Origin: Macrostomum lignano
Lineage: Eukaryota
Direction: 5' to 3'
Assembly (NCBI GenBank): GCA_002269645.1
Contig: NIVC01000202.1
Span: 1 to 64,000, forward strand
Length of the DNA: 64,000 bases
Below the pieces are notes generated by a model. That model was not told the origin of the DNA and ran no database searches. It saw only the letters and a program-made list of their open reading frames with translations. Every line of letters starts with the position of its first letter. Position 1 is the stretch's first letter. Both the position numbers and the translations under genes were made by a program. Below, in pieces: positions 18,463-24,874 of the stretch.

Positions 18463-18980
18463 TTAGAAGATTCTCCGTAACTCTAGAAGATTCTCCATAT
18501 CTCTAAAAGACTCCCGTGTCTCTAGAAGATTCCCCGATAGCTCTAGAAGATTCCTCGTAACTCTAGAAGATTTCCCGTAACTCTAAAAGATTCCCCGTAA
18601 CTCTAAAAGATTCCCCGTAACTTTAGAAGATTCTCCATATCTCTAAAAGACTCCCCGTGTCTCTAGAAGATTCCCTGTATTTCTAGAAGATTTCCCGATA
18701 GCTCTAGAAGATTCCCCGTAACTCTAGAAGATTCCCCGTAGCTCTAAAAGATTCCCCGTAACTCTAGAAGATTCCCCATATCTCTAGAAGATTCCCCGTG
18801 TCTCTAGAAGATTCCCAATAACTCTAAAAGATTCCCCGTGTCTCTAGAAGATTCCCCGTAACTCTAAAAGATTCCCCGTGTCTCTAGAAGATTCCCAATA
18901 ACTCTAAAAGATTCCCCGATAGCTCCAGAAGATTCCTCGTATGTCTAAAAGATTCCCCGTATCTGTATAAGATTCCCTGT
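18463..18980. repeat. 20-bp minisatellite (ctctagaagattccccgtaa)
   Basis: Directly visible; its distal part is duplicated at 23975-24256. Confidence 0.95.
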
Positions 18981-19598
18981 GTCTCTCTCCCAGAGGCAAG
19001 GATTACCCCAATGTAAGTGAATTAGAGTGAGGTGAACCAATTGGTTTATACAAAAGCATTGCCAAATGTCCTTAAAGTTTAATCAGACTTTGAATAGTAC
19101 TTGAAGTTAATAAGATTTTCCATCTGTGAAGACACTCGCCAGGTTTCAGAGGAGAACGTTAACTGACTGATTAATTAGTTTGATCCCTCCAGCAGTTCGA
19201 GTTTCGAGTGCCTGTTAAGATTTTGGGCTGGCTGAGGCCTGCGTGAATGTGAAGCAAGGAGCTTAAAACTCTTATCTGCTTTGCCTAAGGAAGCTGTCTA
19301 GCTGGGATTAAAGATGACGCTGGGCCGGAGTGAATGCTAGTAGATAAGCAGCCTGTAAGCAGATTTAAACCTGAAGGTTTAGCTTGCTGGTAAAATGGAT
19401 GCAATGAATTTCAGTATTAACCGGCTGAGTCAACCGCCTGTCACATGCATGGAGTGGGGTCAGGTCACCAATAAGATTGTTACAGTCTCGAGGGCAGTTC
19501 TAATGGCAAAAGGAATTTATTGGTGGCCACCTCACTGCAGTTCTGCTCATTCCGTTAACCAGCGGCCCTGACTTTCCAATTGTCAGGCACGTACACTC
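18699..19598 (+). repeat. ~900-bp direct repeat, left copy (host DNA flanking the non-LTR element)
   Basis: Matches 23975-24874 at a constant offset of 5276 at both ends (tagctctagaag...gcacgtacactc); no differences found by eye. Confidence 0.95.
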
Positions 19599-19780
19599 AA
19601 ACAAACGGCAACTTAAACCGAGGGACTCTGTGACATCCGCCAGCTTTTCGTTTTTCGAGGAGGCTCTTCCCCCTCCTTTTCGTTCTGGCCTGGCGTGGAA
19701 GCGGCTAGCTTCCTCGTCTTGGTCTGCTGGTGGGGGACGGATCCCCCCTGCTGCTTTTTTGCGGGGCAGGTGGCTGCTAA

Positions 19781-20068
19781 GTAGTTGGCTGCTGGCTAAG
19801 CGCCAACTACCCATCGACAGCCGATGCCGACAGCCGACTACCTCAGGACGGTATCCGGGCCTTCAAGGAGGTTCCGGCAAAAGGCGCTCCCGGCAAGACC
19901 CTGTACATGGGTTTCTCCGCGGAGTGGGAAGACGCCCTCAAGAAGGACGATTTTGCCGCCTACATCGGAGCGTGGAAGATCGTCTTCCACCTGCTGCTCA
20001 GGCGTCGTCCAGCCGGCGATCGGCGCCGAGGTGAGTCCGTGAGCTCGGATAGCTCTGGGAACGAGTAA
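19781..20068 (+). CDS. C-terminal remnant of retrotransposon ORF1 (DUF4780-like)
   Basis: Open frame ...[53 protein letters not shown]...GNE* whose TAA overlaps the ORF2 ATG (TAATG at 20066-20070). The resemblance to LOA-clade ORF1 ends is recalled, not searched. Confidence 0.55.
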
Positions 20069-23000: not shown

Positions 23001-23885
23001 GGCTCGCTGTTCAACGGCCGCGCTGGAGCGGGTATTGCCATTTTCCACGAGGGTAAGATGCTTCTCCAGGAAAGTCTGCACCTCGGTGAGAACACCTCAG
23101 TTTTCCAAGCTGAAATTTGCGCCATTGAGCAGTGTGCCCAGCAACTGTTTCAGGCGAACATTAATAATTTTGACATTAATTTCTACACTGATAGCCAAGC
23201 TGCTATTAAGGCCTTAACCACTGAGAATATCTCCGCTGCTACAGTATCTCAATGCCACCGCAGTGTGCAATCTCTCTCAGTCCTTAACAGGATTAGAATT
23301 ATCTGGACACCTGGTCACAGCAACATCCTGGGCAACGAGCTCGCGGACTCTCTCGCCAAGGAGGGCAGCAACCCAGACGGCAACCACCGTCTGATGAGGC
23401 TACCCACCCCCAGGTCGCAAGTCACCCGCCATATCAACAGGTGGCTCCATCAGCAGCACCAGCTCCACTGGAACAGCTGCACCGAGTACAGGCAGAGCCG
23501 CTCTGCCATGCCTAACCTGAACAGGAAAGTCTCTGATTATCTGATTTCGCTTAACAGAACCGACCTCAGGGAGATGTGCATGGTCCTAACCGGCCACGGA
23601 TTCTTCCAGAGACATATATCGTTGCAAACCGGTTGCCCTCCCACCTGTCCCTTCTGTGGCATAGGAGAGGAGACCGCGGAGCATCACGTCACCTTCTGCC
23701 CTTACTTCAACAAGGCGCGGCACAAATACCTCGGCCACCCCCAGCGGATGGACGAGCTGACCACCGCGGACAATATCCGAGACCTCCGCGCCTTCGTCCG
23801 GGACTCCGGCCGGATGAGGGTCGCCGATGCCTCCACTGCGGACCTGCCGACTACTGGCGGGGACTGGGCGCACCCCCAAGGCTAA
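20068..23885 (+). CDS. Retrotransposon ORF2: AP endonuclease, reverse transcriptase, RNase H, CCHC zinc knuckle (one 1-bp frameshift at ~20512-20517)
   Basis: APE: [31 protein letters not shown]: [43 protein letters not shown]. RNase H: FTDGS, QAEI, TDSQAAI, WTPGH..GNELAD. Knuckle: [18 protein letters not shown]. Adding one C in the C-run joins 20068..20640 to the frame of 20874..23885. Confidence 0.93.
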
Positions 23886-23974
23886 TCCTTGTGCTCTTTT
23901 ACCTTGGGGTTGCGATAGGGGCCTCGCGGCCTATTCGCGGCGCCTGCGCCCCCCGTCAGTAGTAAGTAAGTAAG

Positions 23975-24874
23975 TAGCTCTAGAAGATTCCCCGTAACTC
24001 TAGAAGATTCCCCGTAGCTCTAAAAGATTCCCCGTAACTCTAGAAGATTCCCCATATCTCTAGAAGATTCCCCGTGTCTCTAGAAGATTCCCAATAACTC
24101 TAAAAGATTCCCCGTGTCTCTAGAAGATTCCCCGTAACTCTAAAAGATTCCCCGTGTCTCTAGAAGATTCCCAATAACTCTAAAAGATTCCCCGATAGCT
24201 CCAGAAGATTCCTCGTATGTCTAAAAGATTCCCCGTATCTGTATAAGATTCCCTGTGTCTCTCTCCCAGAGGCAAGGATTACCCCAATGTAAGTGAATTA
24301 GAGTGAGGTGAACCAATTGGTTTATACAAAAGCATTGCCAAATGTCCTTAAAGTTTAATCAGACTTTGAATAGTACTTGAAGTTAATAAGATTTTCCATC
24401 TGTGAAGACACTCGCCAGGTTTCAGAGGAGAACGTTAACTGACTGATTAATTAGTTTGATCCCTCCAGCAGTTCGAGTTTCGAGTGCCTGTTAAGATTTT
24501 GGGCTGGCTGAGGCCTGCGTGAATGTGAAGCAAGGAGCTTAAAACTCTTATCTGCTTTGCCTAAGGAAGCTGTCTAGCTGGGATTAAAGATGACGCTGGG
24601 CCGGAGTGAATGCTAGTAGATAAGCAGCCTGTAAGCAGATTTAAACCTGAAGGTTTAGCTTGCTGGTAAAATGGATGCAATGAATTTCAGTATTAACCGG
24701 CTGAGTCAACCGCCTGTCACATGCATGGAGTGGGGTCAGGTCACCAATAAGATTGTTACAGTCTCGAGGGCAGTTCTAATGGCAAAAGGAATTTATTGGT
24801 GGCCACCTCACTGCAGTTCTGCTCATTCCGTTAACCAGCGGCCCTGACTTTCCAATTGTCAGGCACGTACACTC
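23975..24874 (+). repeat. ~900-bp direct repeat, right copy
   Basis: Copy of 18699-19598 beginning immediately after the (TAAG)n tail. Confidence 0.95.

Follow-up and report, generated by a model that had tools for sequence, protein, structure and literature searches.

A young long interspersed nuclear element (LINE) of the flatworm Macrostomum lignano is flanked on both sides by a perfect 900-bp direct repeat of host DNA. It lies in the first 64,000 nucleotides of contig NIVC01000202.1 (assembly GCA_002269645.1; herein the window), where a 4376-bp insert (19599 through 23974) separates the two copies of the repeat. From position 19838 onward the insert is a 5′-truncated LINE encoding an apurinic/apyrimidinic-type endonuclease (APE), a reverse transcriptase (RT), and an RNase H. 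The repeats adjoin the insert exactly, the LINE ends in a simple-repeat tail, and its 3′ junction shows a short microhomology to the target. A single event of target-primed reverse transcription (TPRT) probably generated this arrangement, the repeat being a target-site duplication (TSD) of 898 to 900 bp.

The window was compared with itself base by base at an offset of 5276 and by blastn, and was scanned with Tandem Repeats Finder (TRF). A preliminary description of this DNA had reported two identical 900-bp copies, and the offset comparison bears this out: there is a single uninterrupted identical run, in which 18699 through 19598 matches 23975 through 24874, exactly 900 bp long at 100% identity, with blastn in agreement. 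In the 50-bp bins directly outside this run, matches drop to background (5 to 21 of 50) at all four edges, identity there being about 20 to 30%. A perfect match of 900 bp cannot be a product of chance. The pair is the sole long dispersed perfect repeat that blastn finds in the 64 kb of the window, the other self-matches being tandem minisatellite; the block occurs twice, and nowhere does one copy directly adjoin the other. Both copies meet the ends of the insert to the base and share no identity farther out, which is as a TSD predicts, unlike an unrelated duplication.

Each copy is in its original context on the outer side only. TRF defines a 20-bp minisatellite (consensus TAGAAGATTCCCCGTATCTC; 26 copies, 81% matches) at 18464 through 18986, so the left copy starts 235 bp inside a longer array. 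The host part of the array outside the block (18464 through 18698, no strand assigned) has no identity with the sequence to the left of the right copy. The left copy itself (18699 through 19598, plus strand) consists of minisatellite (18699 through 18986) and unique sequence (18987 through 19598), and its continuity with a host minisatellite beyond it, as first described, is confirmed. On the other side of the insert, the minisatellite array (23974 through 24262) begins exactly at the junction 23974/23975, and the right copy (23975 through 24874, plus strand) continues into unique host sequence (24875 through 25300, no strand assigned; GC content 0.46) that does not resemble the beginning of the insert.

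A duplication unrelated to the LINE, earlier or later than its insertion, would offer a different origin for the pair: the element may have landed, with little or no TSD, on the boundary of an existing two-unit tandem repeat, or two insertions at the edges may have recombined. The locus is rich in minisatellites and thus recombination-prone, and LINEs in tandem arrays can mimic long flanking repeats, as seen for a relative of the element on a metagenome contig (locus L015, 3061 through 9423; Ga0209260_10000720). There, a LINE of 32% identity whose tail is of the (TAAGG)n type precedes two tandem units of 3000 bp (99.97% identical), beyond which comes a second, 5′-truncated copy of the same LINE; the 14-mer GTCGCTACCGTAGC marks every junction. 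The arrangement resembles site-specific insertion of a LINE, with a 14-bp TSD, into an array of 3-kb tandem units, and no known RNA gene is detected by Rfam in the unit. Such a true array, however, shows empty unit-unit junctions beside filled ones, each with its 14-bp repeat, whereas the window holds the 900-bp block exactly twice and contains no repeat-to-repeat adjacency. Base-exact insertion at the unit boundary would be expected in about 1 in 1800 cases for a two-unit array, the left edge of the block falls in the middle of a minisatellite and is not a natural unit end, and recombination of two insertions would require independent hits at two points 900 bp from each other. We therefore regard an unrelated duplication as very unlikely.

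The longest open reading frame (ORF) of the insert (20874 through 23885, 1003 residues) matches the Pfam families RVT_1 (1.5e-30) and RNase_H (9.7e-13; ORF residues 704 through 832). The endonuclease lies upstream in another frame and is recognized (Exo_endo_phos_2, 6.2e-23) once a 1-nt frameshift is bridged. Searches by tblastn with an M. lignano protein and with relatives, including the APE part of two elements from metagenome contigs (L001 and L002), place the frame switch at 20508 through 20526. This coincides with a run of six C residues (20512 through 20517) at which family copies read ...DVPPPLLQEL, as if the run had seven. Adding one C restores a 1272-residue ORF2 with no internal stop, from the ATG at 20068 to the stop at 23885, and the missing C is the sole defect of ORF2; either a mutation inactivated this copy very recently, or the long-read consensus is wrong in the homopolymer. 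On the plus strand, ORF2 (20068 through 23885) comprises the APE (~20116 through 20820), the RT (~21645 through 22403), the RNase H (~22983 through 23369), and a C-terminal Cys/His motif. Pfam reports APE, RVT_1, and RNase_H only on the element, with no integrase, protease, or GIY-YIG domain, and no match to a restriction-like endonuclease (RLE) in the 1272-residue ORF2.

The RT is of the non-LTR type (LTR, long terminal repeat) and shares 30 to 57% identity with hundreds of APE-RT-RNase H proteins. Together with the APE, the simple-repeat tail adjoining the target, the 5′ truncation, and a flanking TSD (of highly atypical length), this identifies the insert as a LINE; the RNase H downstream of the RT is a feature of the RNase H-bearing LINEs of the LOA clade and the I group. 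Distant matches at 33 to 41% identity share the APE-RT-RNase H architecture and one of them, at 33%, is named Lian-Aa1; Lian is a LOA-clade element. Going by the names of such distant matches, Lian (LOA clade) would be the closest named relative. With these domains and these matches, the label “R1/LOA-type” given in the preliminary description is approximately right.

The relatives L001 and L002 (52 to 55% identity) show the full-length layout of such elements, with a 5′ untranslated region (UTR) of ~0.4 kb, an ORF1 of 268 to 288 residues, ORF2, and a simple-repeat tail in ~5.1 kb. The complete ORF1 of the M. lignano family, ~290 residues beginning MDKSKPP..., is held in gene models such as P0012. 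The window matches this ORF1 at 100% only from residue 223, corresponding to position 19838 (tblastn of P0012, P0021, and P0001; 65 residues, 223 through 287). The C-terminal remnant (19838 through 20034, plus strand) runs on from these residues to the stop and is homologous to residues 216 through 272 of the L001 ORF1. A word-index protein search with the 65-residue remnant returned 0 matches, which reflects a limit of the index; an exhaustive search recovered the 100% matches. Because the match begins only at residue 223, comparison with the layout of L001 and L002 indicates that the LINE is 5′-truncated by ~1 kb.

The preliminary description placed the element at 19599 through 23974, but it is not uniform over this length: the LINE keeps ORF1 only from residue 223 onward and 19599 through 19837 is unmatched to the family ORF1. 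This 239-bp head (plus strand; GC content 0.586, CpG observed/expected 0.78) is GC-rich like the LINE and is not collinear with ORF1. It matches neither residues 1 through 222 of the family ORF1, on either strand, nor the 5′ UTRs of L001 and L002, nor the rest of the window. A minus-strand open frame runs from ~19850 to 19500, across the junction between the insert and the left copy, and the peptide it encodes has no match among database proteins. The head may be family 5′ UTR joined through an internal deletion, a stretch of 5′ UTR that twin priming inverted, or filler acquired when the template was switched; a 5′ UTR in inverted or direct orientation is possible. Inverted ORF1 from twin priming was also considered, as the open minus-strand frame is weakly similar to the N terminus of a relative's ORF1 (E 0.2 to 0.8), and was rejected because the family ORF1 matches neither strand and the minus-frame peptide has no homolog. 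A resemblance of the insert start to the right-hand flank, spotted by eye (CTCTGTG..CCGCC), gave no blastn match and was taken as chance.

The 3′ end of the LINE family can be written as ...CCCCGTCAGTAG(TAAG)n. In the window, the 3′ UTR (23886 through 23974, plus strand) ends ...CCCCGTCAG TAG TAAG TAAG TAAG, that is, TAG(TAAG)3 at 23960 through 23974, and the (TAAG)n tail named in the preliminary description is thereby located. Simple-repeat tails also end the relatives L001, L002, and L015. Beyond the tail the sequence is TAG CTCTAGAAG...; at the left flank it is ...CCCGA TAG CTCTAGAAG. Direct reading of this junction sequence bears out that it lies inside the 20-bp minisatellite and carries TAG microhomology to the tail: the TAG at 23975 through 23977 equals that at 18699 through 18701 and can be assigned to the tail or to the target, TA(G) being common to both. 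As the block's initial bases (two or three: TA, perhaps TAG) may belong to either, the length of the duplication is given as 898 to 900 bp.

The block might instead be part of the mobile unit, either its 5′ region or a pseudo-LTR of a composite element (LTR, DIRS, or Penelope-like). The unit would then measure 900 + 4376 = 5276 bp, near the ~5.1-kb full length of L001 and L002, and the last 100 nt of the block (19498 through 19598) align marginally to the L002 5′ UTR (60 through 480; z = 3.8, reached by 2 of 300 shuffles). This alignment is not repeated with the other relative and is taken as chance after multiple tests; the block has no significant similarity to the relatives' 5′ UTR or ORF1, on which ground it was rejected as the 5′ part of the element, and the family's real 5′ part, the ORF1 known from gene models, is absent from it. 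Its composition is host-like (GC content 0.44), within the range of the repeats and flanks (0.40 to 0.48; left copy 0.43 to 0.44) and against 0.55 to 0.62 in the insert, and it starts inside a host minisatellite that runs on leftward. Neither Rfam nor ARAGORN has a match within it. The preliminary description had argued that the repeat is not an LTR, and we agree: it begins TAGCTC and finishes ACACTC, with no TG...CA ends, there is no 4- to 6-bp TSD outside the pair (CCCGA vs. TCTGT), and no protease or integrase is encoded. A Penelope-like element with pseudo-LTRs was set aside in the same way, as there is no GIY-YIG match and the repeat is host-like and continuous with the host minisatellite. 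The 900-bp block is thus host-like in composition, lies outside the element, and is not an LTR; that it forms part of the mobile unit is extremely improbable.

Several points weigh against a giant TSD at this locus. It is a single case, known from one assembled copy; the M. lignano genome is rich in repeats and partly duplicated, and its assemblies are drafts made from long reads (PMC5730564); a homopolymer error within the window is possible; and the insert begins with a 239-bp head that is not collinear with the family ORF1. The first three of these bear on an assembly artifact, in which the true locus would have one 900-bp copy, with the LINE at one edge of it or absent in one haplotype or homeolog, and the second copy would have been misplaced. 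The published assemblies are PacBio continuous-long-read drafts made with Canu and SSPACE, with heavy redundancy and many repeats (PMC5730564), the element contains a probable 1-nt homopolymer error, and both novel junctions are known from one contig. Nevertheless, at each of the junctions 19598/19599 and 23974/23975 the sequences brought together have no more than 3 nt in common, which leaves nothing for overlap-based assembly to exploit, and the structure contains no gap or N. The junctions coincide exactly with the end of the LINE tail and the 5′ end of the insert, and the geometry is exactly as TPRT predicts. An artifact of this kind therefore appears unlikely.

We thus favor a giant TSD from a single TPRT event. 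The orientation of the tail is that required by TPRT, and, since the element is in plus orientation with its tail adjoining the right copy, the bottom strand would have been opened at the left edge of the block. From this geometry we infer the following order of events. The APE endonuclease, or a pre-existing nick, would open the bottom strand inside the 20-bp minisatellite (top-strand context CCCGA^TAGCTCTAG), and the freed 3′-OH would pair with 2 to 3 nt of the (UAAG)n RNA tail and prime cDNA synthesis. Reverse transcription would halt or switch template within ORF1, giving a 5′-truncated copy preceded by the 239-nt head. The cDNA would then be joined to a top-strand 3′ end, after ...GTACACTC, that lay ~900 bp (898 to 900) downstream of the first nick. 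The right edge of the left copy (19598) would accordingly mark the top-strand break and the end that primed the second strand, and the left edge of the right copy the bottom-strand nick and TPRT priming site. Fill-in or strand-displacement synthesis of both 3′ overhangs would copy the 900-bp block onto both sides; a helicase would not be strictly needed if the annealed cDNA end were extended by strand displacement. The distant top-strand end may have been a nick by the element's own endonuclease, an unrelated or random nick, or an end from a broken or stalled fork or sister chromatid, along the lines of the model for L1 tandem duplications (PMC7058536). The irregular 5′ end, truncated and with 239 extra nt, fits by analogy the L1 pattern of a broad TSD range and end joining (PMC11702581). 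A unit flanked by direct repeats in this way could later recombine to a solo repeat, indistinguishable from an empty site.

The family to which the element belongs is very young and abundant in M. lignano, judging from dozens of UniRef proteins of this species that are 98 to 100% identical to parts of it; a single copy is present in the window. That the two copies of the repeat have not diverged at all fits a young family with a near-intact ORF2. Many of the matching gene models are named for host domains (Ras-associating, C-type lectin, MFS, kinase, SET, RRM, and others) and contain spliced-in pieces of the LINE ORF1 and ORF2 at 98 to 100% identity. Such chimeras include P0006, P0007, P0033, P0038, P0040, P0046 through P0049, P0055, and P0097, among others, and on this comparison the public M. 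lignano proteome is contaminated by fusions of LINE and host sequence.

In LINEs of the LOA clade, as in other RNase H-bearing members of the I group, the domains are arranged as APE-RT-RNase H, ORF1 is separate, and the 3′ tail is a simple repeat; known members make TSDs of ~10 to 20 bp. The flatworm element resembles Lian-Aa1 and LOA elements in these three features, and differs in its probable TSD of ~900 bp, both from their usual length and from the 13 to 14 bp of candidate TSDs in its own relatives. The latter were surveyed in 80 metagenomic loci encoding relatives of 30 to 37% identity, about 15 to 20 of which have at least ~1 kb of flank on both sides. Apart from the tandem array in L015, no flanking direct repeat of at least 30 bp was found in the 80 loci, the only candidate TSDs being of 13 to 14 bp (L015 and L075). 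This is weak negative evidence, because the relatives are distant and few loci have usable flanks, and the short-read assemblies surveyed would break at long repeats. It nevertheless counts as a further point against the giant-TSD interpretation: relatives with usable flanks lack long repeats, and a giant TSD is therefore not the habit of the clade.

Other features of the window lie outside the duplicated unit. Rfam and ARAGORN give no significant structured RNA or tRNA in the region; on the minus strand at ~25080 through 25170, 0.2 kb to the right of the duplication, a tRNA-like stretch is visible by eye (...TTCGAACCCCCGACC...) that might be a SINE (short interspersed nuclear element), although ARAGORN calls no tRNA there. 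A perfect (AGAT)32 microsatellite (17920 through 18047) lies 0.4 kb to the left of the minisatellite. The window is rich in long minisatellite arrays, several of them 1 to 2.5 kb in length. In its first half these are at 651 through 1137, 3765 through 5762, 6895 through 7350, 13426 through 14020, 16498 through 17475, 26332 through 27012, 27894 through 28180, and 28683 through 29664, and in its second half at 35703 through 38261, 50369 through 51028, 53310 through 54523, 54845 through 55827, 56262 through 57014, and 59477 through 60803. The array at 16498 through 17475 (42-bp period over 17000 through 17475, TRF) has a diverged second array, ~85% identical, at 28683 through 29659. A 740-residue open frame on the minus strand (38288 through 40510) contains a GYF domain (2.8e-17) and is probably an exon of a host gene. 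On the plus strand, a 218-residue frame (43745 through 44401) matches a Tc3-type transposase helix-turn-helix at 1.5e-4, under the Pfam cut-off, and may be a Tc1/mariner remnant.

Published cases provide precedents for such an event. In mutation-accumulation lines of Chlamydomonas reinhardtii, more than half of the de novo insertions of Dualen-4b_cRei have flanking duplications longer than 50 bp, the median length being 900 bp (Lopez-Cortegano et al. 2023, PMC9977147). The authors attribute these exceptionally long TSDs to distant strand cleavages, tentatively due to the dual possession of RLE and APE (PMC9977147). In both systems host DNA is directly duplicated on either side of a LINE, the median there being 900 bp and the length here 900 bp. 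They differ in that Dualen has both RLE and APE whereas the flatworm element shows APE only, and in that the Dualen events are recurrent and de novo whereas here a single copy, fixed or assembled, is known from the genome of an animal. The previous record for length, as cited in the same paper, is the ribosomal DNA (rDNA)-specific LINE R9 of bdelloid rotifers, with a TSD of 126 bp (Gladyshev and Arkhipova 2009, cited in PMC9977147). R9 is likewise a non-LTR element with a TSD far above the usual length; as represented in that citation, its TSD is fixed at 126 bp in a specific rDNA site and characterizes the whole family, in contrast to ~900 bp at a non-rDNA minisatellite in a single instance here.

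Human L1 offers a third comparison. Its TSDs reach several hundred nucleotides (PMC1291365), and in cells and tumors its insertion sites carry small tandem duplications and, rarely, megabase duplications (PMC11702581; PMC7058536). The widest TSD range is found among 5′-truncated L1 insertions, with resolution by end joining (PMC11702581), and the cDNA has been modeled as joining a second 3′ end that lies downstream or on the sister chromatid (PMC7058536). L1 thus resembles the element described here in being an APE-type LINE with long TSDs, tandem duplications at insertion sites, and truncated copies that have the broadest TSD range. L1 belongs to another clade, however, which lacks RNase H and has poly(A) as its tail, and its duplications are mostly somatic, tumor, or cell-culture events, whereas the present one is in a germline-transmitted flatworm genome. 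Viewed against these systems, the M. lignano locus is a further example of documented giant LINE TSDs and not a new mechanism.

The statement in the preliminary description that nearly 1 kb is duplicated by each insertion generalizes to the family from n = 1 copy, and is unsupported. It is doubtful that this abundant and, on such a reading, currently active family, or the resolution of TPRT in this flatworm, habitually puts the second-strand end hundreds to thousands of base pairs from the first nick. If it did, LINE insertion would be a systematic source of kilobase local duplications and LTR-like recombination substrates, adding to the unusual load of repeats and duplications in the genome, and an APE-only LINE would suffice, contrary to the idea derived from Dualen that dual endonucleases are needed. 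With a single copy, the present weight of the finding is modest. If real, it provides a germline, sequence-resolved animal case in which one LINE insertion duplicated ~0.9 kb of host DNA, and extends the kilobase-TSD phenomenon from Dualen elements of a green alga and somatic or tumor L1 events in humans to an APE-only, RNase H-bearing flatworm LINE. It would also be relevant to the choice of the second DNA end during TPRT, and would show how retrotransposition can lead to segmental duplication on a local scale and to units with direct repeats, which software that searches for LTRs could misclassify.

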